The notes: generated by a model not told the origin, from the letters alone. DNA of 64,000 nucleotides from Anthoceros angustus (GCA_010909165.1 MU008170.1:806001-870000); one strand, 5' to 3'. Shown: positions 34,240 to 64,000, counted from the stretch's first letter. Program-made: numbers and translations.

Positions 34240-35330
34240 GTGGACATGTGGAGAGCTGAAGATGCATGCCAGGGTTTTCATAGCTTGCTTGACCTGCGGT
34301 GACGTGGAATGCCTTGATAGCTGGGTATGTACAGCAAGCGTTAAGGACTCGGTCAAGAGGCGCTTCACGTGCATGGACAAATGGGAGCAAGAGGGTCGGC
34401 CTTATTTTGGCTGACCATGTTAACATATGGACGGACATATGGTTGGGCAACTGCCTGGTGGACATGGATGCAAAATGTGGGGGACTGGGTGATGCACGCC
34501 AGGTTTTTTGACAGCATCGCCTTAAAGGATGTGGTGACATGGACGGCACTGATAGGTGGGTATGCCCAGCAAGGCCTGGCACACGAAACGCTCGTTGTTG
34601 TGTATGAAAAAATGGAGCAGGAGGGCCTGATTTTGGCTAACCATGTCACGTTTGCTTTTCTTCTGAACCTTGGCCTGTACAGGCAAGCACAAGTGCCTTA
34701 CTTCTAGAAGGGCAGGCACAGCTGCAATCGCAGATCGTTGAAAGAGGAGTGCTGGATATATGACATGGTGTTGGGAAACTGCTTGGTGGACAAATAAAAC
34801 GCCCACCAGCCTGATGGTGCTACTTTTACTTGCCAAGGGTTCCAGTAGCATGCATGCAGCGGTAGCCATATGGGACCAGTCCACGAGCTCAGGCCGCAAG
34901 CACTTAGATTCCATGGCTGAACAGCATGGCATCAAACCTACTGTTGCTGTTGAGCATTTCAATTGCATGATTGATCTTCTTTTGCCGGGCGTGCAGAAGA
35001 GCCAATTAGACGAGGCAGGGGAGATGCAGCCTATTATTATGTGAGGGTGAGGGCCAAAGTAATGTTGTGTGTATGCCTGCAAAAAGTCATGGCGGATGCG
35101 GAAGAAGCTGCTACTAGAGCTCAGAGACCGACTGACTGATGAACACCTGGGATGGATTCAACACAGTACTGGAGATCACTAAGCCTTAGTTTTGTTCTTG
35201 CTCCCTGGATAGAGAGAGGGCGATATGCTGTTAATTTGAAAGCGTTGTTAGGCTGGAGCCTCAAAGGGCAGTGTCTACATGTATGTGCTCATGGCCAATG
35301 AGTGGCAGGTAGGTAGGTGGACAGGCGCAG
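34240..35330 (+). pseudogene. PLS/E-class PPR pseudogene
   Basis: VTWNALIAGYVQQ, DVVTWTALIGGYAQQG, HGIKPT..EHFNCMIDLL and a degenerate E-domain YVLMAN; multiple stops and frameshifts. Confidence 0.85.
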
Positions 35331-38429: not shown

Positions 38430-38870
38430 CTTGCGTTCTAGGCTTAAAGGTGTGATGCTTCAGGTTTTCAACAAGTTTATACATCTGGAGGAATGTCACC
38501 GTGCAAACAACATAGGTATGGAGTTTTATCAAGGAACAACATAATATTTGAAGCGGCTGAATATACACCAAGCGGCTCCGAGGGTCTTTAAACTGGGAAG
38601 GGTGTTTTTGATGGTTGTCGGAATACCCCTTTTGGGATGTAATTGCCAAATTCGCATTGAAAAAACGGGTTTAACTCATAGTCATGGCATCTTCCTTTCC
38701 ACCAGACCACTAGTAGAACGGTGGTACCGTTTAGCAGCATCACGAGGAATAATACCCATGTTGGCTCCCCATCCTTGCGGGTGCAAAATACTTGCCTCGT
38801 GGATTTTACGGTGCCATTTATTCAATCATTGTGAAGAGCGGCGATATGTGTTTGAAATCATATTCTGGAA
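38430..38870 (-). pseudogene. Remnant homologous to the unknown gene at ~60350-61200
   Basis: ATATTTGAAGCGGCTGAATATAC is shared at ~38545 and ~61093; both translate on the minus strand to VYSAASNIM. Confidence 0.6.
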
Positions 38871-42500: not shown

Positions 42501-43653
42501 AATCGTATGGGGTCACCCGATGGCGAGGGCTCCTTAGCTTGCGTGCTCCCGATCGAACCGGCGAAGATAATCCTTCCCATCTCTTCACTGAGCGCATGCA
42601 GAATACCACAGTTATCACCAAGGTGATCCACCTTGGTGAGCAGTTCCAATGGACAATGATCCGGCTACCGCCCTTACTCGATCGGCGCAGATCGGATATC
42701 AACCATCCGTTGGTTGTCCGCTGCCAGCCTCAAGACGCGGGCGGGCCCCCTATCTTCGCCTTAAGGGGCTCGCACCACGCCCCTTCTTCCTCCTTGCGTA
42801 GGCCATCCTCGGGACCTCCAAGGTCCATCGCCTGGTCCTCCGGAGGTTCTTGGATCGGACCTCCTTGTTGATCGCCGCCAACATCTTCCGCAAACTCCGG
42901 ACTAGAGTGACTGTCAAGGTCCGACCATTTGGAACATCCATGCCACCCACCACCCTCGCCTCCGCCGGGCCCAAGTCCGGATAGCCGGTCACAATGTTGC
43001 GCTCCACGAGGGTCCATGGCTCACTCCGGCTTTTGGGTGCCATTGCTTTCTCCTCCTCTTGTGCCGCCGGGCCGAGTCCGGCACGATGTTCCTCCTTCGC
43101 TTTTGCTCCAACCTTGACGGAGCCGCTTGTCGACCGGGCGCCCAAAAGATAGCGCCAGAGAGCCGGAGGAGCGCAAGGACGTGAGGATTGTCTGAGGTCA
43201 CGCAAATGACCTCCCTCCTTGGAAGTAACTGGCAAAGGCGCCTGTCCGTGAATCGGGGTCCGTGCATGGCTTACTCGACCCTACGCCCGCTTACTCGCCT
43301 TACGCCGCGGCCGGGCGTGAATACCGCTATAACGGCCTGCTTACGGCCCCGCCTGCATGCCCGACCTCCACTCGTGGGCCCACGTGGCGCCGCCTGCCTG
43401 CCCTCACGCCCGCCTCCTAGGTTACTTTCTGATTATGCTTTTTTGACTGGAGTGGGTTCCGGACTTATCCGTTACTCTGTAGTCCGAGCTTGCCATAGTG
43501 GTACCGGGGTCCGTTGTTCACTCAGTCCGAGTATACTCCGAGCCTCGTCCAAGCGCTACCCCAATTTATTCCTCCTTTTCCGCCTTATTTATCCTTCAAT
43601 CCTAAAAAGCGAAACCCTACTTATTTCTTAACTCCCGAAGTGCATAGCCCACA
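39522..43653 (-). repeat. 3' LTR (~4.13 kb)
   Basis: On the minus strand it starts TGTGGGCTATGCAC at 43653. The other end is degenerate (plus TTTCACGATGGC vs TGTGACGATGGC). Confidence 0.9.
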
Positions 43654-43669
43654 TACTCCCTTCTCATCC
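43654..43669 (-). other. Polypurine tract
   Basis: GGATGAGAAGGGAGTA immediately precedes the TG of the 3' LTR. Confidence 0.85.
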
Positions 43670-43759
43670 GCATGCCTCCGCCAACACTAAGCATGATACT
43701 TCTTCACCCGCCACCCGTGAGTGGGCAGCCTCTCCATCTAGTCGTGAGCCGGAGACCCG

Positions 43760-46700
43760 TTGTCATATACTTGCACCACTTGGTACGGACCCATCCATCT
43801 CGGTGAAGTTTGCCCGAAAATGCATGTAACGACTATCATAAAGGAGGGCCAGTCCCCTTTACATACTCCCGATTCGCTGATCGTGCCAAATCTTCACTGG
43901 TTTTGCACCAATCGCATCTTCACCGAGCTTCTTCCCCGTCCTCCGTGTGCAACAAACCCCAAGAGTCGCTCTGGCTTTCCTCCTCCGCCTCCCTTCCATC
44001 ATTACTCGAAAAGTGGGCACTTCAAACCCACCGGCATTACGGAGAGTGTCCGTAGGTCAAGTAAGGGTCCGTTGTGTGGTCACCTTCTGCCCGAACGCCC
44101 ACAGTGGATGGCACTTGGTATCCACCATGGGCGTAGTTCATGTGAGTTTATTCAATCCTGATGAGCCCATTTGTCTTCTCTGTCACCCCATTGGCCTTAG
44201 GATTGTAGGGTGCCGTCTTGCGATGATTGATGCCGAAATACTCCGTCATGGCGGCCACCACATCATTAAGGAAATGGGTTCCCCTATCACTTACCAACCA
44301 CGGGACATCCGTGGTTTATGATGTTCTCGCAGTGAATTTGGCCACGTTTGGAGTCCGTTCTTGTCGCCACCGCCTCTACCCACCGTGCGAGTCCGCTGCC
44401 ACCGGGATGTATCTCCTTTGTGTGTGTCTTGTCGAGGTCAGATAGGTCCAACAAAGTCAATACCCCACTTTTCGAAGGTGCGCCAAATATGGTACTAGCG
44501 GCCACCGTGTCGTCGGGGTTGGCTTTCCGATCCACCGACAAGCATCACACTTCTTCACAAACCGGTGGGTGTCCCCATACATTGTTGGCCACCGTATCCC
44601 GCTAAAATCTTTTGGTGGTGACTGTCTTTGCGTAGTGTCCTCCCCAATCCTTCGTGCATTCCCCGACGACCGCTCCTGCTCGCCGGCAAGTACCTGCTTC
44701 TACTCCGTCCCTAATTTGAACACACACCGTTGTACATTCAAGGGTCGAGCATAGTGCACGAATGCCTCCTCCGCCACGAGTCGACGGGAAGCTCCATTCC
44801 CAGAGGTACCGCTATTTCTTCGTAGGTCGGACGGCCGCGCGACCCTCCCTTCTCCGCTCGCTAAGGCCCTCGTAGCTTGGGGTTCGTCGGCTCCTCCGGT
44901 TGTACTTTTACGCGGCAACCAATGTCTCATCCGGAACGCATCTTCCGATCTCTCAACACCGCCTGCTTTTCAATCGTGACAGAAATCGCATTTTGGTGCC
45001 TCCCTTGTCTTGTTTCCACTTGACGTGAACTCCTGCAGCAACAATATCCACCTTGCTATCCGTCCGGACAGTCCGCCTTATTCACCGGATGCCAACAAAG
45101 TGGTCTACATAGAACACAAACTCACTGGTAGTAGTAGTGTCGAATTTCTTGACATATACCATACCCGTGGCCTCTGTAGTTGTGTATTTTCCCGCGTGGT
45201 GAGCCGTCCGTAGTATACGGATAATCCTCGCTTGTCGTCCTTCCGGCTCAGACTACTCCGATAGCAAAAGCGGACACTCTACATACACATGAAATTTCTG
45301 CTCTCCGGTCCTCTTAGAACCGTGCGCTTACCAAGGTGTTACGTAAATCCGAAGGCCTCCTCTCGCCTCCGTGACCAGTCCAAACCTCCTCCTTCCGCAG
45401 AGTTCTCAACTTAGCCCCTCTCGAAAGTCCTTAATAAACCGGTAGTATCCCACCATTCCTGTGAAACCTCTCGGCTCCTTTAGGTTCGTGGTGGAGGCTG
45501 GATGACCGGACCTTGTCCCGTCCACCTCGATTCGCCACCGACACCGATGTCCCACAAGATTCCCTCCGTCATTCCAAAGTAGCATTTCTCGGGTGTAGGC
45601 TCAATTGAGTCTCCGCTCAAGCACCTTCTTAGATGCCCAAGGTGTTTGTCCCGCTCCCCATGCACACAAAATCATCCAGAATATCTCCATGAAGTCCCTC
45701 GAAGTCACGGAAGACGTTGGTCACCATACGCATGAACGACGGCGCTCGGTCATCCCAAAGGCACTTCTCTTGTAGGCAAACGCCCCCACTCAGTAGTGAA
45801 GGTCGTCTTGTCCCAAACCCCCTTAGGTGCAATTGGTTGATCCGGAGTAGCCATCCGAAGGAGTAAGTAGTCCGTCCGCCCACCTTGTCCAAAATGTCGT
45901 CACGAATGGCATGGAAGTGGTCCTTCTCCGCTGGCGTTGAGCTTCCTCAATCTTGGCATACCGAATTTGTCTGGCTGCTTGGGAACCACCACAATCGGGC
46001 GACCCACTGCTGATTGATGGGGAAAATGATGTCCGCCTCCGTGTACTTATCAAGGACCTCCTTCACCTTGATCGAATACTTGGGGTTGAGCTTGTATTGT
46101 CGGATTCGACCGGGCACCGCTCCCGGCTTCAAATCGATCTTATGCTCTCCCACTTCTTGAATGCCCTTCATGTCCGTGACCTTGAAGGCGAACACACGCA
46201 AAACTCCCCAGTGCTTTAGTCCTTCCTTCAGTCCGGAGGCATGCCTTTCTTAAACTTCGTGAATTTGCTGGCCGGACCTCCACTTCTTCCACGTCCGGGT
46301 TCACTGCCTCTCCGCCGCCTCGCTGGCCCAAACCCCTCGTCCTCCACTCGGGGATCCCTCTCGCATCCCCATTCCTCAAGAGCTCGTGAGGTGAATCGTG
46401 TTACTCCTTCGATGTCCGCTTTTCCTTGGTCCGACTCTTGTCCCCCCAGGCCGGGTCCGACCTCCTCTTCACTTCCTTCCTCCAGGCTTGTGGCGTTTAC
46501 TCAAAACAATCAACCACTTCGCGCCAAAGGCATCCCGCCGTAGTCCATCTCCTCCTCGGACCACGGATCTTGGCGAAAGGGTACGCCTCCTGAACTATCT
46601 TGTTCGTCGCTGGAGTCCTCCACGAGGTATACCCTTCCGGTAGTGCTCACGTTTCACAATAGGTGTCCTTGCTCCGGTGATAGCAACCCTCCCTTCTCGC

Positions 46701-49700
46701 ACCTTAGGGTCCCACCACCGCTTGAAGTGAATCTCCTTCCTTCCAAAGTGTAGCTTTATGCAGGCCAACCCCCCATGGCCGCCCAAAGAACACCTCATAC
46801 CCTAATGGTCCGGCCGGTTTGATCACAACAAAATCCAGTTTGTAGGGTGCGCCGGCTATGGTGGCCAAGACTCCGGTTAACTCCCCCGCCGGATCTCTTC
46901 TTGACATGTCTGCCATTCTCAGAGTCTTCGTTGAGGGTTCGAAGGATGTGAAGCCCAATTTTCGTGCCGTGGCTTCAGTGATGAGGTTGACTCCGGACCC
47001 CGTGTCCAACGGTACATCCTTGATGATACATCCAGAAATCTCCACTTGTACCACTGGCGCCCCTGGGTCCGTATGGGACACCACCCTCACTTCCACTGTG
47101 CTACCCTTCCTGGCTTTGGTGCTCCGCCGAGGCTGGGTTTCCCTAACCCGAGACCTCTGATTTCGGGTTATCCTCGTTGCCGAAAGGACACAAGGTGCCG
47201 CGATTCATCATCGTCCGCCACATTAAAGGGAGGCTTCTACCCCAATCGAGGATCCTGCTGCTGCGTCCTCATCCTCTCCCGGTCACTTGTGTTCGGTATT
47301 CTCCGGATGCTTGCGCATTTCCTCCGCAACATCTCCACCTCCGGACTCGTGGAAATCGGCTGGCGGGAGGCACCGTTCTCCCCGTCCTGCACGGAGAACT
47401 TCCTTGGTAATCCTCCGAGCTGCCGTCCAGCTCCTTCATCGGTCGGATCCTCGTATTTCCGTTGATTGCCTTCCTCGGCGTCGTGGCGCTTCCTCGATCT
47501 TGTTCTTCTTCAATGGCGCCTTTCGTCGCTCCTTCCTTGACTACGAGTAGACACCTCCAAGATTTACTCCCTTCCTTCGACACCACCTTCTTGTTCTTTT
47601 CCATCTCGCGTACTGGAATCTCTTCCCTCCGAGCATCTTGACTGCAGCAGTCTTAGGAGGTGGCGTTGGTGGTCGGGTTCTCCGCTTGGTGGCATACTGC
47701 CCTTGTGCGGGGTTGGGACATAGCGTCGCCTGCCATATGCCCACCGCTGCCGCCACACACGCTCAAGTCCCCATTACCGCCTGGGTACGGACACGCGTTG
47801 GAGTAATGGCGGATTCCGCAGTTCCAAGACCACCTGCGGAGGATACGAAGGCTCCCATGCGGTCTTTGCATCGGTGGGGCCTGTTGGTGACGGACCTCGG
47901 TTGACGGATACATGGTTTTGGGATATCGCGGCCCGGAGGGGCTTCTGACTGCAGGCCTCTTCCCATTGCTCCTCGCCTCCTCGGAACTATCTTGTTCGTC
48001 GCCCGGTGGAGTCCTCCTGAGGTATACCCCGGTAGTGCTCACGGTTTCTCCACAATAGGTGTCCTTGCTCCGGTGATAGCAACCCTCCCTTCTCGCACCT
48101 TAGGGTCCCGGTCCCGGCTTGAAGTGAATCTCCTTCCTTCCAAAGTGTAGCTTTATGCAGGCCAACCCATGGCAGACAACACCTCATACCCTAATGGTCC
48201 GGCGGTTTGATCACAACAAAATCCGGTTTGTAGGGTGCGCTATGGTGGCCAAGACTCGGTTAACTCCCGGATCTCTTCTTGACATATACGCCATCTCGAG
48301 TCTTCGTTGAGGTTGAAGGATGTGAAGCCCAATTTTCGTGCCGTGGCTTGGTGATGAGGTTGACTCCGGACCCGTGTCCAGTGTACATCCTTGATGATAC
48401 ATCCAATCTCCACTTGTACCTGGCCCCAGGTCGTATGGGACACCACCCTCACTTCCTGTGCTACCCTTCACGGCTTTGGTGCTCATGTGGGTTTCCCCTA
48501 ACGGCCCGGACCTCTTGTATTTGGGTTATCCCTCGGCGGTATCGAAAGGACACAAGGTCTGGCGATTCATCATCGGTCCGCCACATTAAAGGCGAGGCTT
48601 CTACCCCAATCGAGGATCCTGTGCTGCGTCCTCATCCTCTCCCGGTCACCGTGTTACGGTATTCTCCGGATGCTTGCGCATTTCCTCCTGCAACATCTCG
48701 GTCACCTCCGGACTACGTCCGGTGGCTGCGAAACCGTCGCGGAGAACTTCCTTGGGTAATCCCTCGCGGAGGCTGCCCGTCGGCCTCCTTCAGCCGGTCG
48801 GATCCTCTGCTGGTATTTCCGTTTGATTGCCTTCCTCGGCGTCGTGGCCTTCCTCGATCTTGTTCTTCTTCAAGCTGGCGCCTTTCGTCGCTCCTTCCTT
48901 GACTCACAGTAGACACCTCAAGATTTCCACGACTCCCTTCCTTCGACACCCCGTACCTTCTTGTTCTTTTCCATCTCGCGTACCTCAGGAATCTCTTCCC
49001 CTCCATGGTGAGCATCTTGACTTGCCGTCAGTGCGGTCTTAGGAGGTGGCGTTGGTGGTCGAGTTCTCCGCTTGGTGTGGCATATCGTACCGTCCTTGTG
49101 GGGTTGGGACATAGCGTCTTGCACCATATGCCCTTGCGATCGCCACCTGACCGCTCGAAGTCCCCATTACCACCTCGTTGGAGTGCGGACACGCGTTGGA
49201 GTAATGGCGAGATTCCGCGGTTCCAACGGACCACGGCCGTCGGAGGATACGAAGGGCTCCCATGCGGTCTTTGCATCGGTGGGGCTCGTTGTGTATTGGA
49301 CCTCCGGTTGGCGGATACATGGTTTTGGGATATCGCGGCCCGGAGGGGCTTCACGCACGATAGGCCTCTTCCCATTGCTCCTCGGCCTCCTCCTCGTATT
49401 CGTAGTCCACTTGATGCACCGGCCTTGAGGCGGTTGATTTCGAATGGCCGTGTTTCGGCACACGGCACACGAGATGCGTCGCCGTAGTCGTTTTCCGCCT
49501 CTCGGTCCTTAACTGGTTTATCGCGGTCCTCTACTCTCTTTATCACTTTTCCGGTCCTCCGCACTGCCACCTCCTTTGAGGGAGTCGGGTCCGTGGAGCT
49601 TCTCGGAGGTCCGGTGTCACCACCTCCTTCTTACCACCGCTTTTTAGCCGGCCTTCTTGCTCTTCTTCTTGGGGATACTCTTCCTCGCTAGAGACCTCCG

Positions 49701-50500
49701 TCTCTTCTTGGACGATTGCTCCTCCTCAAGACACCTCCGATTGGTCTTCCTCCTCCTCTCAAGACTCTTCCTCCTGAGTCGAACCCGTTTCTTCTTCTTC
49801 TTCTTGCCTCCTTGAGCGGATTTCTTTATCCTCGATGTAGCGATTCCTCGTAGTTTTCCGCCTCCTCGACCGCCTTGCCCACGTCCTTCTCGGCTAGCAG
49901 CAGGACGTGCCTGGCCATGGGTTTGGCTAGACCGGCCGCGAACCACCGTACCGCTTGCATCGTGGTATGGGTTGGATGCCGATCCCTCAGGGCATAGAAC
50001 CGCTCGATGTACGAGCCCAGCTTCTCCTTCTTCCTCGCTGATTTTCCAACTTTGATAATACATACCCCTCTGGTCGATCCTCGAAACCGTTCTAAGAAGG
50101 CATTTTCAAAGCTTCAAACGAGGCGGGTGGGGCATTCTCGATTCGATACTTTCATTGAGACCGTCCCTGAGAACCCCTTGGAAAAGCGGATGAGGCTGGC
50201 CGCTCCTCCTGAAGTTGGCTTTGGACATGAAGTCCTCCACAAAGGTCTCGCATCCCGCTCCTTCTTCCCTCCGAATATGGAGTACGCTTGTTTGGTCGAG
50301 TAGGGGCCATGGCCGCCATCGAGGTTAGGCGTGTCCTACCTTCTTCCGTACGCCCTCGTACCGCACTGTCTTGGTCCGACAATTCGACCACGTTCTCCCT
50401 CCTCCTCCGATCGACTGCTGCTCTCGTTGGGTTTGACGTCTCTCCCCGGCTCGGAGAGCACGCGAGGTGACCACGTCCGATCCTCCCGACGTTCACTCTT
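43760..50500 (-). pseudogene. gag-pol (frameshifted as assembled)
   Basis: Gag: FLERF..EKLGSYIERFYAL and CCHC-like WNCGIRHYSNACP. Protease: LDTGSGVNLI (~46981-47010). RT: HKIDLKPGAVP, SGYNQ, LDDF (~45668-45679). RNase H: FVFYVDH..GRIARWILLLQEF. Integrase: KWGIDFVGPI..WVEAVAT, then WMGPY. Confidence 0.92.
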
Positions 50501-50576
50501 GACCGCCGCCGACCGCCACGCATTCACTTACCTTCTCTTCCTAAGGACGACTTTGCGCACCACGACGATTTCATTC

Positions 50577-50587
50577 CAACGGCGCCA
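50577..50587 (-). other. Primer binding site, tRNA-Asp type
   Basis: TGGCGCCGTTG lies 3 nt after the 5' LTR end (...CATCGTCACA-TTT). It is the same PBS start as in Athila-type elements. Confidence 0.85.
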
Positions 50588-50590
50588 AAA

Positions 50591-53500
50591 TGTGACGATG
50601 GCACACAATCCGTGTCGTTGTAGGAAGAAGTCCGTTCCCAAGGGAATGATAGGCTGCCGTACGCGTGATTCTACCGTCCTTAGCGCCTGCTTCCAACACA
50701 CACACATACTCCTAACTACTCAACGTTCACCGTGTGCCGGATGGTAAAGCGACCCGTCCGTCCGTATCGTCACATACATCCTCACGCATCCCCTTTCCTC
50801 TCTCCTCACACGCTACACTCGTCTTAGAAAAGACGCGGGTTACGCGGACCTCCTCCGTCGTTCACGGGCCTCCGTCCGGGCTCTACACGCCTCCCGAGTT
50901 CCTCGGCCACACGCCCGTTCGTCGGCTCGGGCCGCGCCCGGACGAGCACGGGTCATCACCACCCTTCCCCGACACACCACAACGCGTTAGTCCGTCACGG
51001 GACCTTGATCAATCTCCCGAGCCGCTCGTGCTCGACTCAGACTCACGCAAGAAGACTCACAAAGGTCCGCAAGAACGCGGCATCAACACCAAGAGAAAGA
51101 TGCTTTACTAGAGCTTTCTGCGCCCAAGGCGGCGTCTTTATTACACCCCTATTACGATAGCCATATACCCTAATCGCCGCCTACCATCCTATTTCCTCCC
51201 TATCTCCTTCGCATGGGAAGGTCCGGGCCCCGGAATGGGTGGTCCAATCCCGTCCCCGACAGCTTGTGGCGCACAATCGGATGATCCGTGAGGCGGGCCC
51301 TCCTCTCCCGGAATCCTGCCGTTACACGGCGGTCGACAACCGCCGACCACGACGTCATCCTCCTCGGCCTCCTCGGGTCCTGGGGCCACCACCTATTCCG
51401 TAGCGAAGAGGGGCTCCTCATCGCTGCAGCCCCTCGAGGTCTGCCTCGACTCCCCGAACTTCGTGGAGTCCCCGAGTCCGTCCAGGTCCGACCGGGTCCT
51501 CGGACTGGTCCGGACCTCGTGGTCCGGACTTATTACCGGGTCCGGACTTGTGGTCCGCCTCTCCGGGTCCGGACAAAGTCCGGACTCACGCCCACCCGGT
51601 TTCCTCCCTCACGGACTCCGTGGCTCTCCTCAAGTCCTCCGCTCCCGATCGCCCGGTGACTCCTTCGTGGCCCTCCTTCCATGGTGAGGTGCGGGTGCTT
51701 ACCTCGCGATCCGCCGCCTCCCTCGTTGCCTCCTCCGCTCCTCTCCCGCCTCATTCATCTCAAACAGGCCACTAGGGTCTGGCCGCCCCTGGCCTTCATC
51801 TCCTTCTCGAGCCTTCCAGGGTCCGTCCGTGCGTGGCGCCGAGAGGCTTCTCGCCGTGAGCGTAATAGGCAAAGTCCGAATCGACTTGTTGAATTGCCTC
51901 TTCCACGTGTGCCCGAGCACCGATACTCCCTCCGCCATAAGTGTTCCGGAGCGGGCCGCCCGGCTTGTTGGCCACCTCTCCGCCAGATTTGTGAGCCGGT
52001 CAGATCACGCGAGGCTGGGGCGGCCTCGGTCACCTCCTGCACTGCTGTTGCTCCGCCTCAGCTCCGTTTCCTCTCCATTGCCATTACCATAGCGCAGCGC
52101 TTCCCTTCCGCCTTTCTCACCGGACTTCTTTTCTTCCGTGCTCGCGCTCCGCTCATTCTCGCGCCTTAGCTCCGACTCCCTCTCCAGCGGTACCTCGTCC
52201 GACCCCGGACTTCCTCCTTCTCAGAGCTCGGCAACGCCCAACTCCTTGGATAGTCGCCGATTTTCCTCCGTCTTGACGGAGCCGAGGCACTCTATTTCGT
52301 GCTCAAGTCGTGGATTCTCTCGTTGAGAATCACTGCCGCCCGACGCATCTTGGAGTTGTAGCTCAGGTGTCCTGCTGCCTCCATCTGCCGCCTCCTCTAC
52401 TCTGCACTGCATTCGGAGATCTCCTATCTCCCGAGTCGGCCTCCATCTCCTCCTCCTGCCTTGCTCGATAGCCTTTAGTTAGCTCGGTCACCTTTCCACC
52501 CGATCACGCCCAGTGATCCCGCCGCTTGCCGCGGCTCACTCCTTCGCCGCCTTTACTGGCCTCGCCCACTTGGCGCCGCTTAGCCGGCCGCCCGCCAGTC
52601 CCGAGCTCGCTTGTGCCCGGCCTCTTCCGCCTCCCCGCCCCCTCACCGCAAAGGTCCTCCCGCCTTGGGCCTGAGCTTCACTGTCAGACCTGAAGAACCT
52701 TGGCCCGGAACCGCCCGGCCTCTCGCCACCCGGCGTTCCCTTCCTCGATCCGAGCGAGGGACTCCGCCTTTTCCTTTGCCTCGGCCGCACTTGCTCTTGA
52801 GTTCCACCATCCTCCTCGGGTGGCCTCCACTTCGGGTCTTCTCACTGTACCACAGAGACCCCAAAGCATTCCGTCCATGTGAGTGACTCGTGTTTCTTCC
52901 ACGGCCCGGTGAGGCCCCACAAAGTCCGTAGTGAGCCGGCATTTCTCGGTCCGCCAAGGACCTCCATACCGCAGCCCCGAGTAAGTCCGACTGGGTTCTC
53001 GGACCTAATCAGGGACCCTCGGGTCCGAGTGGTGAGGTCCGAGTCTCACCCTCTTGGCCCTCTTGGCCTCTAACTCCTTTGTGCCCTCTTTCTCCTGGGC
53101 TGAGAGGAGGGGGGTCCGGAGCAAGCTCTTTTGCCCCGGGAGGGACTGGCTGGGTGGCTGCCGCTGACCTCCGCTCCTTGGGCCACGCCTTCGCCTCACC
53201 TCACCTGCAAGGGGTAAGGGCACTGCACCTTCCGAGGTGCGTAGCGGCACCGTCTTCCGCCTCGGCTCCCGCTGAGTTCGGGGCTCGCACCGCCGTGGTT
53301 GTTGGCGTCGCCGTGCCGAGCCGCCAACGCCTCCGCAGCCCTCTCCTCCGCCCCGAGGGGCACCAAAAGGAGGGAAGGGGAATCTCCCAAACTTCCTGGT
53401 GGTGAGGGGTTCGCTCACGTATGGAGTCCGGAATCCTCGCGTCCTCCTCCCGAGTCCGCTTGGTCTTGAAGGACGACCCCACCTCGGCGCCTTGCACGCC

Positions 53501-54724
53501 TACTGGGGGCCTCCACCCCTTCCGAGCGCCTCAAGCTCTCCTCCTTCAGAGCTCAAATGTCCCCATACAATCGTGTATGGGGTCGCCCGATGGCGAGGGC
53601 TTCTCGCTCCTTAGCTGTGCTCCCGATCGAACCAGGCGAAGATAATCCTTCCGCCTTCTTCCTCACTGAGCGCATGCGAGAATACAACAGTTATCACCAA
53701 GGTGATCCACCTTGGTGAGGTTCCAATGGACAATGATCCGGCTACCGCCCTTACTCGACCGTCGCCAGATCGGATATCAACCATCCGTTGGTTGTCCGCG
53801 TTCCAGCCTCAAGACGCCACTGTGGCCCTATCTTCCCTTCGCCTTAAGGGGCTCGCACCACGCCCCTTCTTCCTCCTTGGTTGTAGGCCATCCTCGGGAC
53901 CTCCAAGGTCCATCGCCTGGTCCTCCGGAGGTTCTTGGATCGGACCTCCTTGTTGATCGCCAACATCTTCCGGGCAAACTCCGGACTAGCCGGTGTCCAG
54001 ACCATTTGGAACATCCAGATGCCACCCGCACCAATTCCCCGCTTCCTCCGGCCGGGCCAAGTCCGGATAGCGCCGGTCACAATGTTGCGCTCCACGAGGG
54101 TCCATGGCTCCTGACTCCGCCGCTTTTGGGTGCCATTGCTTCTCCTCCTCTGGGCCGCCGAGTCCGGCACGATGTTCCTCCTTCGCTGCCGCTCCAACCT
54201 TGACGGTGCGCCTTTGTCGACGCCCAAAAGATAGCGCCAGAGAGCCGGATTGGAGCGCAAGGGCTGTGAGGATTGCTCTGAGGCGTGAATGACCTCCCTC
54301 CTTGGCCGGCTGGGAAAGGCGCCTGTCCAGAATCGCTGGGGTCGCATGGCTTACTCGACCCTACGCCTGCTCGCCTTACGGCCGCGGCACCGCTATAACG
54401 GCCTCGCAAGGTTACTTCACCTCATGCATGCCCGACCTCCACTGTGGGCCCACGTGGCGCCGCCTGCATCCTCACGCCCGCTCCTAGGTTACTTTCGCAT
54501 TTCTTATCCTTTTGACTGGAGTGGGTTCCGGACTTATCCGTTACTCGTAGTCCGAGCTTGCCATAGTGGTAGGGGTCCGTTGTTCACTCCAGTCCGGAGT
54601 ATACTCCGAGCCTCGTCCAAGCGCTACCCCAATTTATTCCTCCTTTTCCGCCTTTATTTATCCTTCAATCCTAAAAACAAACCCTACTTATTTCCTTAAC
54701 TCCCCGTGAAGTGCATAGCCCACA
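50591..54724 (-). repeat. 5' LTR (~4.13 kb)
   Basis: TG...CA termini on both ends; colinear with 39522-43653. Confidence 0.92.
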
Positions 54725-54789
54725 CCCACAAGATGTTTCGAAGTTAGTTTAAAACCATAGTATACTATAACGGTGACAAATGCCTTTTG

Positions 54790-56290
54790 GATGTTTGGAG
54801 GTCTTTTGCACTTCCCTCGCTTTTCAGTGGCTCTCTCATTTCACTCCTCAAAATACTCCCAACATATTTGCCCTCGTAAGCATCGGTGTGGTCCGCTCGC
54901 CACTGCACAAGTATATAGGGTTGGTTGCGAGATGGACATTAACAACCTTCGCTACCTGCTATGTGTGTCGCCTTCACACGGCGTCACAATGAACATTCCT
55001 TTCTATCTCTGATATTGCCATTCATCCTCTCCATTTCCTCCTCCGGCTCGATACTTTGATAGGCCCCAGTACCCTTTGTGGTATTTCGCACAACAAAGCC
55101 TCATCAAATACTGCTTCTTCCGGTATCTGCATTGGAGGAACGTGTGCCTCATCCGCTGCCCTGTCGTACATCTCCAGGGGTTATGCAGGACAAGTCCAAT
55201 GTTATGGTCTACTATATTTGCGATTTTAACTTGATCATTCCAGAAATCCGTCCACCATTCTTCCTCCGCAGTAGTCAAATAAGTTGGTAGCTTTATCAAT
55301 CCTTTCTTCAAGTGATCCACGCCTTCACGTGCGGTAAGACCGCCCTCACTGCCCTTTCGCCCGCAGTGCCATCAAGGGAGTCGGGACGACGTCGAACATG
55401 AGACAAAACTCCAGCCCATCTTCTGATTCCCACAATGGCGAGGTAGAGTAACGCTTACTTGAATGACAAGCATTTTCCGCGGCCGACTTTGTCTTCCGTG
55501 TGATTTTGAACGGTGTTGAAATGATAGGTTGTTCAACTTCCGCACCGCTGTATTTCCGTCAATCCTCGCTCCTATAGGCCACACGAATGACCTAAGTCGG
55601 CAACCTCACAACAGCTTACCTCTGGATTTGGCGTGAATGACTCCTCAAAATTTCTTGCATTGTAGGTAAGGACCGCCTCTTTATGCTTTAAATGCTTGGA
55701 GAAACAAGAGAACATTTGATCTACTCGGTCGGTGTATGCCCGACAAGAAGGAAACCAACCTTCACTTTCTCAAACGTCCCGAGTTCCACAAGCATGTTCA
55801 AATACGCAAATAAAAGCTGGTTCTTGTTCTCCCTACATGTGTTGTCCAATCAGATATAACACCTTGGGAAGTAATCCTGCATAGGTATGTATAACATCTG
55901 GATAATGGTTATTGTCGAGTTTGCATCATTGCTAAATTTGCATAATCGAGATAGGCGAATGTGTAGTTATGTATCATGCATGACCACATGTCGTGATTCG
56001 ACTCTCCTCTTTCAAGTCCTTGGGCCACCTCAAAATATGTGGGAGTGAAGTTTTCTTGGTCCATACCATCGATTGATAACAACATATATTTATGAGGCTC
56101 CTTGTAAGATTTTGAGCGATGCTTGGTCAACTTCTTCCTTTCCTCCATCAATCGTATCGATGCTTGTTCGGCCTCTTGGTACAAGGCATTCGCATCACAA
56201 CAATACGGTCGAGATATGGCCAACCATGAAATATACCAAAAGAAGCTATCCGATGATTGGACCAATCGAATGTTATATGCCATCACGCTT
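54790..56290 (-). mobile_element. Sola1-like (DUF7869-type) DDD transposase, frameshifted as assembled
   Basis: Across frames: ERKKLTKHRSKSYKEPHKYMLLSIDGMDQ.KTSLPH, NDANSTITI, PKVLYL.LDNTCRENKNQLLFAYLNMLVELGTFEKVKVGFLLVGHT.DRVDQMFS. This gives the D..DN..ENKN..GHT...D pattern. The superfamily is assigned from motif recall, not a search. Confidence 0.8.
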
Positions 56291-56639
56291 GCACAAAATC
56301 AAATTGTAAATGACATTGAATAGAGATCAATAGCGTGGCATATATACTAAACATGGCGGCGGCAACGTTCATGCGTAGTCGCATGCCGGCACTTATGCGG
56401 CTTGCTTTTCCGCGCTGGCACCATACCACATGGGAGACGGCGTCACGGAATGTGCCGGCGGTGACAAAATCAGCCGACGGGCATTGCGTGCTTTAAGCGG
56501 CATGCTTGATGTACGCGTGGGCGGCATGCTGCCCATGCGCCTCTTCATGCAGGGGCGGCATGCGGCGCCTGCCACCAGGACATTGTGGGGCCCGGCGTGG
56601 CGGCGCCGCCTTACTTTAGAGCCGCCGCTAAGAATGTGA

Positions 56640-57900
56640 GCGCCAGCATGCCATCGCCCTTGCTTGTGGCGCTCTAGTATCCGCATAGGATGGGAAAGCG
56701 CGAGTTGAAGCATGCCTTGTAGATGCATGGGATGCGCGGCGCCCTCGTGCAATCCTCATGCGGAAGGATGGACTCCATTTCTCCATAGCGGAGCGGGCCG
56801 ATGTGGAGTATGCCTGCGCATGCGCACTCGGAGTTGGGACCATGCAAGATTGGAATGGAGCAAAAGGACTACGGTTTGATATGCATACTTCTCCGGCTGT
56901 GCCATTTCGCGGTTAGATACCAAAGTCCAACATCTCAACTTGTTCATCTTTGATTGAAGTGCCTATTTCAACATTCAATGACCAAGGACCCCCTCACTCA
57001 GGATTGGTTTTTTGGTATGTTGAAACGCTTGAGCAAAAAGATGGAGTTTGTGAGGACGCATCCTTTGCATTGAATCTTGAGATGTCTCTGTCCCATGGGC
57101 ACGCAGAACATGGCGCGTGATGTCTTATTACATTGGAAAGCCGGCATCGCTCTCCATGCTAAAGCATGGGAGGGCATCGAGGCACCCTGCCTTGGGGATA
57201 GCATCTCATGCCTCTACTCCCACACTTACTGCCCTATGCGCCTCTTCAAGGCCTTTAAGCGATTGCATTGGAACTGTCCCATGAGGTGAGTATAAACCTT
57301 GTCTCTTGTTTTGGCACAGAAATTAGGGCGCAAGAGGCTGAAAGGTCTCCCTCCGGCCGCCCCATCCTCAAGAACTGCTGTTGCTCTTGGAAAGCTTCTT
57401 TCGTAAACTTGGGGATGCATAGTTTGTTGCAACAAGGCTTGGAAATCTTCACCGCAGATCTCCTCGCTCTTCTTAATGAAAGCCTGCCGCCAACGAACAC
57501 AAAACCCGCATCATGCTAGGTTGTAATGTCTCAAATAGGCTTGGGATGGTATGTGATGGCATTGCCACCACTCCAGCCTCGTAATTCGTGGAGGTGTCTC
57601 AAATACATCCCGTCCTCTCCATTGGGAGCTCCCCCATGTCCACCACCACGGGTTGAACAATCCCGCCGCGGCGCGACTCTGCTTCCTTCTTGTCTACGGC
57701 GATCCTCCTCGCACGGACTTTTTGCATGGTGAGTACATGTTCAAGTTCCTTGAAGTTGAAATTACATCTTGGGGCATCTGGGAATCTTTGGTGAGTCCTT
57801 CGCCACCAGGACTGCACCAAGCACAACATAGCATTACGGACGAACACATGACACCACATTGACCGACAAATTAGCAAAGAACTTCGCAAAGATGTGACAA
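56640..57900 (-). other. Cys-rich coding-like exons (possible transposase N-terminus or separate ORF)
   Basis: KPCCNKLCIPKFTKEAF and ECACAGILHIGPLRYGEMESILPHEDC; frames are broken and no family is recognised. Confidence 0.4.
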
Positions 57901-58439
57901 CAATGAATGCGAATCCCTACTGTGGTCATGGAAGGAAGATGAAACAGCCCGCCCCATTCCGGTCGTGGGTGCCACCAGGTTTGCCTCTCTTTCCGAAAAG
58001 TGAATCAAGTACTCTCATGAACTCGGAAGCATCATCTCCTTCCCGCACTTCATCTAACAGGACTCAACATGTTCGGTGAATGCCAATTGAGCGCAAGCTA
58101 GGCGAGATAATGCACGGTGAACAAAAAGCATTACCTCGGCCGTGCGCGTGGCCTGCAAAGATGGTTGCGATGTTGTAGCCGGAAGGTCGCCACGGCCCAA
58201 TCGTCCTCCACAGACTCCAATGAGCTTCGGCTCTTTGTTCATCCCGTCCTCAAAAGAGTCGGAAGGTCATTAAAATAGGAAATGAGTGATTGGAGAATCC
58301 TACACAGATACGCTACAGCCAATGTGCTCTTGGAACTAATGACGGCCAAAAGCTATGCCGCATGGTACGTTAGGACCGCTTCATTTATTCAAAACGACTA
58401 CCGGATCATGACTCGCGTGATGAACGCGGTTTCTTAAGG

Positions 58440-60330
58440 TCAGTTCCCAATTAGGGTTTAATGAGAGCCGCATTGCCCTCCCCGCCAAGCCCGAGTTACG
58501 AATACGCCGTGAGACAGCAGGCGTGTCATCGCGTGGAACATTTGGTGTTTGAGGCACAACGATGTGCGATCGAATTCTCGCGGAGGACGCCATCACCGCA
58601 AGCTCCCCAACGCTTTTCGGACGTGCTCATCGACGGAGAGGTGTCTTTCTTCCCAAAGCGTGGATTTTGGTCCTCAAGTTCTGGATTTTGATGATGCTTG
58701 TTGGCGCGGGACATGGCGGCGCTTGAAGCAAAAAGGACTGCGGACATTGGACCGCCACATGGTGCCCTCTTGGAAGCCCGGCGGAAGAAAGGAAGAAAGC
58801 AGAAGGATGCGAAGTTGCTGTAGAAGATCCACCTGATTGGTCTTGGCTCTGTGGGAGCCAATCACTGCGGAGGAGCATGTTGTTGGGGAGGCGGGAGAGG
58901 AGGAACAAAGGCGGGTCAGCGGTTGCAAAGGCAAGCACGACCAAGGCAACGGCGGTGTGGAGAAGCGTGGTATATCCGGGCGGCGCCGAGTTCAGACCCA
59001 AACCCATCCCCTACGTATGTGGAGGCAGTGCGGCTCGAGGCACACAAACCGGCTTGAGGACACGGTGCTTAGAGCAAGATTGGATTTGACACAAGAAGGC
59101 GGATGAAGACAATGTAGTGTGGACTCCCATCTCAAGCTATGGATTTTGGGTATGGATGCTGCAAACCAAAGAGCAAGAGCGGTGGGTTTGTGGGCAACTA
59201 TGGATGCAGCCAAGGAGATCACGAAGTCCACTTCTTTGCACATCACGGCCGTATGAATTTGAGGTACGCTCACGTGAGATGATTACATTGTCTTTGTGTT
59301 GAAACTAGCATGCTTGCACAGAAAGAAGTGTGAGCCAAAACAACTGTCTTATACTTTCCGGGAGGCTTTGCGAGGACAGAATGTAAGGATACATTTTCAT
59401 GTGGTTGCGAATGTTTGCGTGCCTGGTGACAGTAGCCACATTCTAATATCGTGGATGTTTGTTTTGCTCAGACTGCGAAATCTTTCTACAGATGTTTGTG
59501 TGAAGCCATCACGAACTCAATTGTGAGTCCTCGACGGGAAATGTCATTGCGGAGAACATGACAGGGACTTCCAGACTTTGCTTTGGATTTTGAGGATGAC
59601 GAGGTAGAGTTCGGACCTTCCGATGAGGAGGATGGGCCTATCCCCGAAATCCTCGGTCACTCTGATGTGGAGGCATCCGAAGAGGAGGAGGACCACGAGA
59701 AGGGCGAGGAGGAGAGGGGAAAGTATTCAGGCCATGCTATATGTTACGAGCAAAGTGGGCGGAGGGAGGCGGATTACGGCCCTCCGGGGAGCATTCCCAA
59801 GGGCGTCGGCACCGGCACCATGGGCGGAGTCCCTATTCCCGCCAGATTTGACAATGAGTGAACCCCAAGCCTCCATCCCAAGAAAGGAAGAAAGGCGGGG
59901 ACGGACAATTTTCGCAGCAGATGAGTGCAGATGTTGGCGGGGTGGGCGCGCATGCCGGCGCCCGTGATGTCTTGATGGTGAGGTTGGGCGCGGCATGCGC
60001 CAACCTCGTCCCGTATTCTTGAGCGGGCGCCCGGCGCCCGTACTCAGGTTGATGAGGAGGCGGCCGCCCGTGAAAGTCCACGGTGATGAGGAGGCGCGGC
60101 ATGCCGCGCCCGTGAAGGTGCACCGGCCGATGAAGACGGCGCCGCATGCCGGCCGTGAAGGTGCACCGGTTGATGAAGAGGGCACCGCATGCCGGCGCCC
60201 GTGTGCACATGTGGATGAGGAGGGCGCCGGCATGCGGCCCGTGAAGGTGCACATGTCGATGATGAGGCGCGGCATGCCGGGCCCTTGTGGTCGATGAGGC
60301 GCCGGCATGCCGGCGCCGGAAGGCACTCCG
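58440..60330 (+). other. Unknown multi-exon gene with an acidic tract and a repetitive C-terminus
   Basis: Chain of plus-strand ORFs, a GT-AG intron at ~59385-59460, DFEDDEVEFGPSDEEDG, then ~14-aa PVKVHxxDEEGAGMPA-like repeats. Confidence 0.45.
59945..60320. repeat. ~36-42 bp GC-rich tandem repeat built on (G)CGGCATGCCGGCGCC
   Basis: About 8 copies, ending in the 20-bp perfect palindrome GGCGCCGGCATGCCGGCGCC at 60298-60317. Confidence 0.9.
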
Positions 60331-60349
60331 CGTTCTTATGAACAAGTGG

Positions 60350-61200
60350 CATCAGGGTTGAAGAGTGAGTAGGAATTCAACACAGTGTAGGTTAATGTTG
60401 AACTCAAAAGTCAAATCATCAATGGACTTCCAGGAGGGAGTGGCAAGGTTCCATAAATGCTTAAGAGCGTACAGACCCTGCATCCTGATATTTTTAATAT
60501 GTTGTGATCGTTTTATCCGAAGATGAGACCCGGGCTTCCACATCTGTTCAAACCGTGCAGAGGGAGGGCAAGTGCTTGGAAGAGTGTCTCATCGAAATAG
60601 GAATTATCTCCAACTCCTTTTCGATTACTTGGCATCATGAAAAACATGTCTAATTTGCCGCAATTTCTGTAATTCCATTGAACATATCTTTGCATTCGAG
60701 AATGCCTGGAAAATAACCCTTCAAAGTGGTAACCCACTTTCCTTTCAAACATGCCCCTCCTAACGGGCTACACAATTTATGCGGCCGCACCGTAACACAA
60801 GGCACCACGAAAGCAAACAAGGTCAGAAGGAGAACGAACGATCTCAATGCGGCAACCAAGAAACAAACATCAAATTAGATGCTTGCAACTGAAAGTCATC
60901 GACCAATGCCACCCAGCACAAAACCCCTAAAGCATGAAAGAGTGTGTCGGCATGCTTGCGCACTCTCACACCCATCCAGCCCAAAACTACGAAAGCACAA
61001 GAGAGCGTGCTGTTTAAAAAAGTACTCTCTTTTTAGCCCGTCTCTGGAAAGAGGATCTTGACACTTAACCATAGTAGACCTTAACACCATTATATTTGAA
61101 GCGGCTGAATATACAAACCCGCTTCCGCAGAAAAGGGACCAGTTTTCAAAAACACCCGGTGGGCACCAAATTCCCACATAGAGTTGTTTTCTGTTTTTGA
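60350..61200 (-). other. Unknown gene (ORF-X), frameshifted or spliced
   Basis: Consecutive minus-strand segments: VYSAASNIM, KGKWVTTLKGYFPGILECKDMFNG, SYFDETLFQALALP, LYALKHLWNLATPSWKSIDDLTFEF. Confidence 0.5.
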
Positions 61201-61460
61201 GTGATGGTTCATGATATCCCTACCCTAAGGCAGGTACGTATTCCACCGATAATGCTTCTTAGGTATGGTATGAATGCATCGGCATGCCGGCGCCTTGCGC
61301 CATTTCCATCGGAGCGTCTGTCATTCACGGTACATGATTGACTGAATAAAGGTATGATGCAATAAACTAATTATGTATGTAGTGAAAAAGGCGCCAACAT
61401 GCCGGCGTCTCCTGTAAACTTCCTTCACTCTAAGGAAACACAAAACCTAGCACAAATACC

Positions 61461-64000
61461 CTAGCTTCCGAGTTCTTCAGCAGCAGTCTGAGTCTCTGGT
61501 GGGCACTGACCAGATATGCTATCCATCACCAATTCAATGCTTTTGAGACGGGCGTGCTCGGGGTCTTCGAAGTTGTCGTTCTCCATCATGGCATTTTCGG
61601 CATCCAAAGGATCAATAGGATTGCTTTCGGTGTTGTAGTCCGGATGCCACACTGCGCTCAAAGTTCTCTGTCATCATCCAAGATTTCCCCCGTTTTCTCC
61701 TTCATTCAGTTGAACCCCAAAGGTACAACCTGCGCTTGGGAGACACCCTTCTCGGACAAGCTCAATTCCTTTGCCCAAAACTGGGCTGGTCCTCGTCGAT
61801 GTGGCTCGTGATTCAACTCCTCCTCAGCGTCCGGGAGTACTTCATATCCATGAATCCGTTGTGGGATGAATTCCGCGCAACGCTTGTCCAAATCCACTGC
61901 AATGCAATTTCGACCAGCAGCCCGATTATTTGTCGTTCCGCTCCCTGCACACGCATCTACAATCCAGTCCCCCTCTTTCGAGAAGTTTTGATCGACGAGC
62001 TTCAACCCCTGGCCTCGTCGCACACTGCTAAGCTTGTCCAATGACATATATAGCGCTTCTTCACGACGATGTTATGCCCAATGATTTGCCCGACCATTGT
62101 TGAAAGAGCCATGGACGTTGTTAGGCAACATTGAAACCACCTTAATTTGGTAGTGGTAACCCCCATTACCGTGATGTACTCCACAGTATCATATCCACCC
62201 TGATCATTATGCATATTGGTTTTGTCCCACACAAAGGAGACCATTCCTCCACCAATGCACCACTGTCGCATTGCCTCCCTTACAATATGCAGCTCTTCCA
62301 CACCATGCATAACTATCATTCTGATTTCTTCGCAGCTTGTCATATCATGGAAAGAGTGAAACACTGTGCCAATTTGTGTCTGATCCATCTTCACATCATG
62401 CTTTCCTTTGTGGAATCCTCTTGGCACATCCATAACCAGCAATGTATACTTCCTCTTCCTTAGAAATCCTCGCATGTCCAACACATCTCTTGCAACCACT
62501 TGGTATTTAACAATAAACCCGTCGTTGGCACAGTAAATGCCTATAGGCCTTCCTCCATGTCCATGTTAGCCAGGGCCCTTTGTTCGTTCTCCAGACCTTT
62601 CCATGTGTGCACTTCAAGTATGAAAGCCTGGAAGTCTTTTGGCAGTTTCTTCAGATCTTCTACATCTTTCACTTGCTACACACAGCACATGTTAGGTGGT
62701 TAGTGCACAACAAGCTTGTCCGAAAAGATGCAGCGGGGCGCGGCATGCGCCCTCCCACTACTTCCTTCTAAAGCCTCAATTCCAACATGAGGAATGGGAG
62801 GCGCGGCATCTGCGCCCTCCCTACTTCCTTCTAAAGCCTCAATTCCAACATGAGGGCGCGGCATGCGCCTCCCCGCCCTACTCTGTGTACTAAAGAAGAG
62901 ATATACCTTCCCAGACGCTGTTTGAAACCTTGCAATGACATCGTCCGAAGAGTGCATAGGGTATTCCTGCCGCACCATGTCGAAGAGTCGCATCCTAAAT
63001 GCTTTGCCATAGCCACTTGTATGACATGAAGTTTCTTCCATAGAGTGAGCTCCTTGACATACCATTGAGGTCAAGCAAACCTGTCAAAACCTTTTCGTCA
63101 CACTGATGAGCATTTTTTGTCCGGTCTCACGGTGGAATTCCTTGGAAACTGCGCCATGGTTTCCCCTGCATCTCTTTCGGCTTCACGAAAACGCTTTCAA
63201 CCGTCTTCACCTCCTCTCCAACTTTGCGTTTGCCCTTGCTCTTCTTGGTGGTGCCCGCTGCAACATGTTTGGCTTGTTCTGGGAGCTCCATCGCCTCCCA
63301 CTTTGAAAAGATATTATCGACATTTCTCCAAACCTTTCCCTCCAGTTTCGCAATGCATAGGATATGTGTCCTGTTGTCCACTTTGTTCTGGTTATACTGT
63401 TCATCTTCCCGGCCTTCGTCATCCTCGATCAGTAAGCGAACGAGTATAAGCCTCGGGGCTGGGGGTGGAAATAGCAGATCTCAAAGCGTGGACACTGCTG
63501 AGGGTTCAAGCAGGACACTCGCTAGTGCTTAAAATGGGCTTGCTAATCTGTTCGGGCTGCTTTGGATGCTACACGTGCCTTTGCACCTGGCGACTTTGTA
63601 ATGCTAGCACACACATAGACCAATCGGGCTTGCCTCTTGATGTGACCTTTGTGCTCCTCATTTCTAAGTTGGAAGGGGACGACGTTATTTTTTACAGAGT
63701 AGTAAGAGTAGTTTTGATAGTTGCATACATAAGTTTATTTATTAGAGCTACATACGGCATGGCCTAAAGTCTAAAGCCTATAGAGTCATATAGATAGATA
63801 TTCTAAAGTCATATGGCTGCCTATTATAGAGTTACATAGGGTACAATAGGCTTTGGCAAGGCCGTCATGTTTCGGCCGGCCGCGGGCTTTTCCGGGTTTC
63901 TGTTCAGGATTTCGGGAGCGGCGGTTTGCACGGTGGGTTGTTAGGTGCTTTGGCGGGTTGCGGCCCCTCTGGCCGGGGGCCTTCGGCCAGCCCAGCGGGG
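61461..64000 (-). CDS. Large spliced protein with a C-terminal beta-class N4C/N6A DNA methyltransferase domain (MTase ~61790-62500); 5' end beyond the window; frameshifted as assembled
   Basis: Motif-IV-like LLVMDVPRG (62419-62430 for DVPR), then FVWDK, then motif I WIVDACAGSGTT (61931-61957) and GRNCIAVDLDK..EF...RI. A GT-AG intron at 62676-62906 separates it from upstream helical-domain exons, and an acidic tail ends at 61461. Confidence 0.8.
62735..62880. repeat. ~58-bp tandem repeat (2.5 copies) inside the methyltransferase gene intron
   Basis: GCGCGGCATGCGCC...CTACTTCCTTCTAAAGCCTCAATTCCAACATGAG is repeated. Confidence 0.85.

Follow-up and report, generated by a model that had tools for sequence, protein, structure and literature searches.

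The giant DNA transposon Sola1-1_Ec32 of Ectocarpus, a 21.5-kilobase (kb) Sola-1 element, carries opposite its transposase gene a second gene that combines a ParB-like domain with an N4C/N6A methyltransferase domain, and its authors have proposed that this accessory protein binds and marks its own element (PMC12477816). We analysed a stretch of 64,000 nucleotides (nt) from the land plant Anthoceros angustus (GCA_010909165.1 MU008170.1:806001-870000; this whole stretch is called the window, and positions are counted from its first letter). Within it we studied the region from 54.7 to 64 kb, which holds remnants of a DUF7869 transposase gene and of a methyltransferase gene, and compared it with fetched contigs encoding relatives of either gene (L numbers; homologous proteins carry P numbers). 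An initial annotation, made from the sequence alone, had read this region as a giant transposon bearing a methyltransferase, an idea already published for Sola1-1_Ec32 (PMC12477816). Our comparison with that element is one of published architecture, not of sequence: the same layout occurs in six loci related to the window, whereas Sola1-1_Ec32 has a brown-alga host and the named relatives here are Riccia loci and Ceratopteris, Adiantum and Ginkgo proteins, and whereas the copy in the window is dead, tandem and has an arginine in motif IV. The same common architecture (PMC12477816) is the basis on which the DUF7869 transposases may be equated with Sola1. In the literature we found no paper describing the land-plant family, and none that mentions DUF7869. 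The kind of element is known; what is new is its land-plant membership and the arginine variant.

A second comparable system is found in the Plavaka (KDZ) transposons of the red alga Bostrychia, in which PAG2 has a PF01555 methylase and PAG3 a ParB-like domain, and inverted-repeat arrays next to the ParB gene have been proposed as PAG3 binding sites (10.1101/2025.02.11.637652). These arrays parallel the palindromes of the window, whereas the transposase belongs to another superfamily and the two activities reside in separate proteins, with ParB joined to a 2-oxoglutarate (2OG) oxygenase and a SET domain joined to the methylase. Related accessory genes are described from transposons of red and green algae. 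The bacterial and phage ParB-N6_N4_Mtase fusions, CcrM, M.RsrI and M.MboIIA share the fold and motif order of the plant family, and a fusion of ParB with PF01555 exists in bacteria. The bacterial beta-class enzymes have DPPY where the plant family has D-I/V/L-P-Y/R-G, and the plant genes differ from them in their introns, long acidic linkers and eukaryotic transposon setting. Marchantia DN4MT1, with a TSPPY motif IV and no extra domains (10.1101/2021.02.12.428880; PMC8885841), and the bdelloid N4CMT, which carries a chromodomain, are likewise permuted PF01555-type enzymes of bacterial origin in eukaryotes and write N4-methylcytosine (4mC). Neither is reported to be transposon-borne, whereas the plant family has an Asp-first motif IV and is fused to a ParB-like module. 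A Ser-first motif of the TSPPY type was not found here, the window having DVPRGF and its relatives D-I/V-P-Y-G. Since motif IV is D-x-P-R/Y and not TSPPY, the connection to DN4MT1 or N4CMT drawn in the initial annotation is unsupported, and the family is tied to these enzymes by the common fold only.

The evidence set out below indicates that the 54.7-64 kb region very probably represents the decayed remains of a Sola-like cut-and-paste DUF7869 transposon family with a divergent ParB-like and methyltransferase gene, and that the locus is a fossil. Every recognisable coding remnant in the region is on the minus strand, and nothing in it can act today.

The DDD transposase motifs named in the initial annotation are present, IDGMDQ at 56073-56056, LDNTCRENKN at 55849-55820 and DRVDQ at 55730-55716, all on the minus strand. 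A 42-residue piece with LDNTCRENKN matches Pfam PF25273 (DUF7869) above the gathering score (E=3.1e-15, 56.7 bits, cut-off 26), the stretch after it also matches DUF7869 (E=6e-4), and more than 60 DUF7869 proteins align at 55.17-56.18 kb in tblastn searches (P0022, for example, with E=5.6e-16), the named relatives coming from Riccia, Ceratopteris and Adiantum. The three acidic motifs have kept their order, yet they lie in three separate frames, and stop codons occur inside the tblastn high-scoring segment pairs (HSPs); this marks the remnant as a pseudogene. In full-length relatives, which are 865-930 residues long, the first motif is found at about residue 340-390. The N-terminal parts of three such transposases match one spot of the window in the correct order (Table 1), a match that is not significant alone.

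The methyltransferase gene remnant occupies 61.46-63.48 kb on the minus strand. Its linker exon matches positions 383-468 of the 536 positions of the N-terminal family hidden Markov model (HMM) with E=1.6e-16, and the open reading frames (ORFs) of P0011 and L003 in tblastn with E about 1e-15; P0010 and P0011 carry the homology upstream to 63435, which identifies a conserved region ahead of the enzyme domain. The N-lobe is recovered by the family HMM with E=1.1e-25 and by tblastn with P0001-P0011 with E about 1e-14. The family HMM was built from the matches of a phmmer search over 1.84 billion representatives, which returned only nine (best 33% identity; most pass PF01555), and it detects two pieces of the window, at E=1e-25 and 5e-20, and nothing else in it. 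Motif IV (MDVPRGF, 62433-62413) stands upstream of motif I (DACAGSGTT, 61957-61931) on the minus strand, which is the beta-class order; LLVMDVPRGF is included in the stop-to-stop frame 62005-62565, and GDWIVDACAGSGTT in the frame 61709-62071. The position of the single supported intron coincides with the junction between the spliced homologue P0011 and the unspliced genomic contig L001. This intron contains a 63-bp tandem duplication (62737-62855) with two palindrome sites.

The remaining breaks in the gene are not introns, because consecutive homologue residues align to abutting or close DNA in different frames: the tblastn HSPs along the gene run in frames -1, -3, -2, -1 and -3, with direct abutment at 62984. 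The linker exon is interrupted by an in-frame stop at 63127-63129, after WRSFQGIPP, and by frameshifts near 63060 and 62984; near 62560 the frame shifts again and about 12 residues are lost, a further frameshift lies near 62050, and the acidic tail of the C-lobe is in yet another frame. In total the gene has at least three frameshifts and one in-frame stop, so that no intact reading frame is left, and its YQKP motif has degenerated to RRGQG. Neither a 2.1-kb nor a 0.87-kb query was listed in any public sequencing run. The family HMM found no ParB-like core in 63.5-64.0 kb, only linker positions being present in the window, and the last 600 bases have no match to the rest of the window. The broken frames and the missing ParB-like 5' part show that the gene is a 5'-truncated pseudogene. 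Of the intron-containing methyltransferase gene described in the initial annotation, one intron and the beta-class order thus stand, whereas the gene itself is broken.

Table 1. Features of the window, with the evidence on which each is based.
Feature	Position	Strand	Basis or remarks
DUF7869 (Sola-like DDD) transposase pseudogene	55174..56184	-	Core and part of the C-terminal region; Pfam, tblastn
Possible transposase N-terminal remnant (weak)	57345..57452	-	N-terminal parts of P0033, P0042 and P0028; tblastn E=0.03-0.8
Accessory-gene exon remnant, linker after the ParB-like domain (VWRNVDNIF...PWRSFQGI...EYPMHSS)	62910..63480	-	Family HMM, tblastn
Conserved phase-0 GT..AG intron	62676..62906	-	Spliced P0011 against unspliced L001
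Methyltransferase N-lobe, motif IV DVPRGF (62430-62413) non-canonical	62167..62675	-	Family HMM, tblastn
Methyltransferase C-lobe with RRGQG, motif I DWIVDACAGSGTT, NCIAVDLD and acidic tail	61464..62071	-	Family HMM E=5e-20
Four GC-rich GCATGC-centred palindrome sites beside the transposase remnant	56381..56563	.	
Main palindrome array, 8 sites	59950..60317	.	43-nt tandem units at 60063-60289
Palindrome sites on the 3' side of the methyltransferase pseudogene	60950..61411	.	GCATGC cores at 60950 and 61282
Old long terminal repeat (LTR) retrotransposon, bounds the finding and is not part of it	39537..54724	.	4.1-kb LTRs, 82% identical

The same two genes occur as a pair elsewhere. In all six transposase-bearing loci (L003, L005, L006, L007, L008 and L010) a ParB-like and methyltransferase gene lies head-to-head with the DUF7869 transposase gene. 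One of them, the 9-kb contig L003, was found via the methyltransferase and has an intact 619-residue DUF7869 ORF (Pfam E=1.7e-49) next to a long methyltransferase gene; the loci with DNA that were found via transposase homologues (L005, L006, L007, L008 and L010) are head-to-head in five cases out of five. Two of these (L005 and L007) are Riccia sorocarpa chromosomes, and two (L006 and L008) come from environmental assemblies, their ParB-like proteins sharing 73-75% identity with a Ceratopteris protein. Both window remnants have their homologues in the two partners of the paired loci. Transposase and methyltransferase therefore travel together in this family. The linkage that the initial annotation had based on adjacency in the window and a shared motif family is borne out at the level of the family, by six independent loci in other sources, and not by the window copy, which is tandem and consists of two pseudogenes.

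The Riccia copies look intact, with annotated gene models for both genes, a 21-nt inverted repeat and dozens of element-specific palindromes. In L005 this inverted repeat is perfect and brackets both genes over 11 kb; its left arm abuts a 100-N assembly gap, so that the target site duplication (TSD) is unreadable. Two ion-channel (Ion_trans/EF-hand) gene models flank the 11-kb Riccia unit (L005:1-3804 and 24013-24286). At a distance of a few kb from the pair in L007 (16703-19815), and near the methyltransferase gene in L001 (11918-12892), there is a Peptidase_C48 (Ulp-like) gene; some elements may have it as a third gene, or it may belong to a neighbouring transposable element (TE). In L006 the methyltransferase gene has on its 3' side a dense field (100-4633) of 100-200-nt units, repeated in both orientations, which could be a subterminal repeat array.

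The initial annotation had assigned the methyltransferase to PF01555. The pieces from the window score 20.2-20.4 bits against this profile, below its cut-off of 26.7 (E=6e-4, motif I region only), whereas the homologues P0001, P0003-P0006 and P0015 pass the threshold and the family HMM matches are strong, and it is on these matches and homologues that PF01555-type membership rests. A phmmer search of the PDB with the window piece alone gave no match; the family profile matches TTHA0409, MboIIA, RsrI, CcrM, DpnA and the A. vaga N4C enzyme there. A structure model of an Arg-type homologue, and not of the broken copy in the window (P0004:40-330; predicted local distance difference test score, pLDDT, 80; predicted template modelling score, pTM, 0.83), matches CcrM with E=4e-13 and a template modelling (TM) score of 0.61. 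Further structural matches of this model are M.BceJIV, RsrI, MboIIA, PvuII and A. vaga N4CMT (E=5e-11). Taken together, the HMM, PDB profile and structure-model matches identify a genuine beta-class amino-methyltransferase family. It is very rare in protein collections, and within the searches made no member was found in annotated flowering-plant proteomes.

It is in the catalytic motif that the window departs from its relatives. The tetrapeptide (D/S/N)PP(Y/F/W) is replaced by DVPR; relatives in SRR33208241 have DLPR, so that the window and the SRR33208241 contigs together read D-L/V-P-R-G, and L004-L008, L010, P0003, P0007 and P0009 have D-I/V-P-Y/F-G, L004 and L010 being, like L006 and L008, environmental loci. 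In contigs of another organism the D-x-P-R-G variant persists at 30-40% identity. To judge from the motif, the replacement of the base-stacking aromatic residue of motif IV by arginine (DVPRGF) may have altered or abolished activity in the lineage of the window. An Asp in the first position of motif IV is the pattern of the N6-adenine enzymes RsrI, MboIIA and CcrM. These enzymes are top structural matches too, and specificity is not readable from motif or fold.

Intact relatives possess a ParB/Srx domain and a helix-turn-helix (HTH) domain at the N-terminus, fused to the methyltransferase; a module in this position is absent from the window and is present, according to the model, in the family. 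A model of the module based on 17 sequences (pLDDT 82, pTM 0.74) matches Noc, ParB and KorB across the ParB/Srx and DNA-binding domains with a Foldseek probability of 1.0 and E values down to 3.5e-6, and its first domain is also matched by sulfiredoxin. At the place of the Srx/ParB signature motif there is an invariant YYVIGG-x-HS-x-EARRQL. Since Pfam gave no significant ParB match for the ParB-like ORFs, the assignment rests on the predicted fold. Relatives of the module occur in Ceratopteris and Ginkgo, where they are fused to PF01555; together with the named transposase relatives they agree with a land-plant host of the window. One candidate was discarded: fern ParB-like proteins aligned by tblastn at 56831-56947 (E about 0.1-1), and since the family HMM gives no support at this place we attribute the alignment to chance. 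Separately, the ParB-like module (residues 255-549 of the L006:6814-8463 protein) reached a language-model feature score of 0.96 against fungal DUF3723 clusters, which we regard as a lead only; the predicted structures of these clusters resemble ParB, and the models suggest that DUF3723 may be a ParB-like family too.

The shared motif family mentioned in the initial annotation proved to be real, in the form of GC-rich palindromes limited to 56381-62859 within the window. All 20 CGGCATGC/GCATGCCG sites of the 64-kb window fall within these limits; against dinucleotide shuffles, the span has 19 such sites where 0.4 are expected, and the GC-rich LTR element has none. The sites form palindromes of the type GGCGC-GGCATGCC-GCGCC beside the transposase remnant, in a tandem array, 3' of the methyltransferase remnant and in the methyltransferase intron. 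A perfect 20-nt palindrome, GGCGCCGGCATGCCGGCGCC, lies at 60298-60317, and a copy of it with three mismatches at 61390-61409. The related loci have palindromes of their own: TGTATGCG|CGCATACA is found at 11 sites of L005, all within the 11 kb bounded by the inverted repeat, CCCATGCG-N-CGCATGGG at no fewer than 15 perfect sites between 5521 and 14169 of L007, and L008 and L010 have palindrome clusters in the divergent intergenic region. The palindrome type thus differs between the window (GGCGCCGGCATGCCGGCGCC) and Riccia (TGTATGCGCGCATACA and CCCATGCG-N-CGCATGGG). ParB-family proteins bind palindromes, as ParB binds parS, and by this analogy it is reasonable to infer that the palindromes of the elements are putative binding sites of the ParB-like module.

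Several points weigh against reading the region as the remains of this transposon family. The two remnants are in tandem, both on the minus strand and 4 kb apart with the methyltransferase upstream, whereas the canonical pair is divergent; the head-to-head order of Sola1-1_Ec32 is absent from the window and present in the six paired loci. In the canonical layout each remnant would have a partner on the plus strand, the transposase remnant at about 58-61 kb and the methyltransferase remnant beyond 64 kb. Two canonical copies lying tail-to-tail would have left a further methyltransferase or ParB remnant on the plus strand between 56.4 and 61.4 kb, and family HMMs and tblastn detected none there. 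The ORFs of this interval match neither Pfam nor any fetched relative, which leaves the two or three unknown genes that the initial annotation had placed between the remnants without support. Sola transposons have terminal inverted repeats (TIRs) and a 4-bp TSD (PMC10741241). The search of 54725-64000 gave no convincing TIR and no TSD, and nothing beyond pairs that are short and imperfect; on the right the region continues past the window edge, which leaves the element without a defined boundary. The size implied by the term giant is likewise unsupported, the Riccia L005 pair being bracketed over 11 kb. Two further contigs, L001 (16 kb) and L002 (8 kb), carry the methyltransferase gene with no DUF7869 gene nearby. 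The transposase and methyltransferase trees leave the window remnants unplaced, so that they do not establish the same sub-lineage for both: in the transposase tree the remnant has a very long branch and joins Riccia and Adiantum rows in one run and L003 in a second, and the methyltransferase tree has a basal polytomy in which the Arg-type and Tyr-type clades are not resolved. Finally, palindrome binding and methylation of the own element are only what we infer for the family.

The tandem order and the broken genes point away from an intact cargo-bearing element; most likely the window has two partial copies that belong to one family, or a single copy that was rearranged. Alternatively, a lineage-specific variant could have its methyltransferase gene upstream of the transposase on the same strand, and the region would be a single decayed element of that kind. 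One palindrome family is present both beside the transposase remnant (56.38-56.56 kb) and in and after the methyltransferase gene (60.95-62.86 kb), and once distant long branches are removed the transposase remnant groups with L003, which has an Arg-type partner, with a support of 86. We nevertheless consider such a variant rather unlikely, as all six loci with both genes are divergent, the methyltransferase remnant without its ParB-like 5' part is a fragment itself, and the 4-kb spacer matches nothing. The view that this is an intact, possibly active giant transposon that carries its cargo and methylates its own DNA has in its favour that both gene families occur within 9 kb and that they share a motif family. 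Provided that the lesions are not assembly errors, it is contradicted by transposase motifs lying in three frames with stops, by the frameshifts, the in-frame stop and the degenerate QKP motif of the methyltransferase, and by the lack of a ParB core and of TIRs together with the non-canonical orientation, and is highly improbable. We judge it just as implausible that a domesticated host amino-methyltransferase gene happens to lie beside an unrelated transposon remnant. L001 and L002, with a homologue and no DUF7869 gene nearby, would fit such a gene, as would the spliced ORF P0011, which shows normal gene processing in a relative; the window copy, however, is a pseudogene, the partners occur together in every transposase locus, the family has the rarity and the absence from annotated flowering-plant proteomes noted above, and the palindromes are common to both remnants.

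The region thus remains, in our preferred reading, a fossil of the paired family, and for the family as a whole the following scheme can be proposed. The transposase would move the element. The ParB-like module would bind the element-specific palindromes scattered through it, in the manner of ParB on parS, and the methyltransferase would then mark the element's own DNA at nearby adenines (N6) or cytosines (N4). Tentatively, and with the odds against it as a whole, we suggest that non-flowering land plants (liverworts, ferns and Ginkgo) possess a Sola-like family that has been recently active in some of them, and that its ParB-like and methyltransferase protein may recognise palindromes in a parS-like way and write N6-methyladenine (6mA) or 4mC on its own DNA. 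The arginine lineage would then represent a non-canonical variant that is functional, either on a new target or as a reader rather than a writer, and the elements could bring amino-methyltransferases to plant genomes.

The region is set in TE-rich DNA next to a nested LTR retrotransposon, which adjoins the 3' side of the transposase remnant. No TSD was found for this retrotransposon, its flanking 5-mers being different; its LTRs are unusually long, and an integrase-like match is located at 44.2-44.4 kb. A 24-nt sequence, ATATTTGAAGCGGCTGAATATACA, is exactly repeated in direct orientation (33 nt at 94%), with one copy at 38544-38567, about 1 kb left of the LTR retrotransposon, and the other at 61092-61115, roughly 350 nt to the 3' side of the methyltransferase pseudogene. 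This repeat is not inverted, and its length exceeds that of a TSD. Pentatricopeptide-repeat-like ORFs (for example VTWNALIAGYVQQ) at 34293-34704 on the plus strand fit a land-plant host gene near the TE cluster. At 177-17750 there are seven perfect short palindromes with the common inner arm CTTGTTAG, which are part of array units in the first 20 kb.

The window has a fossil copy only, and its value is that of a pointer to the family and to the arginine variant of the catalytic motif. With this family, the architecture recently reported for brown, red and green algae is extended to land plants. A transposon that carries a DNA-modifying enzyme of its own could use it to mark or protect itself, a possibility relevant to the interplay between mobile elements and host silencing, and the intact-looking Riccia copies would make the writing of 6mA or 4mC by a plant transposon directly testable.

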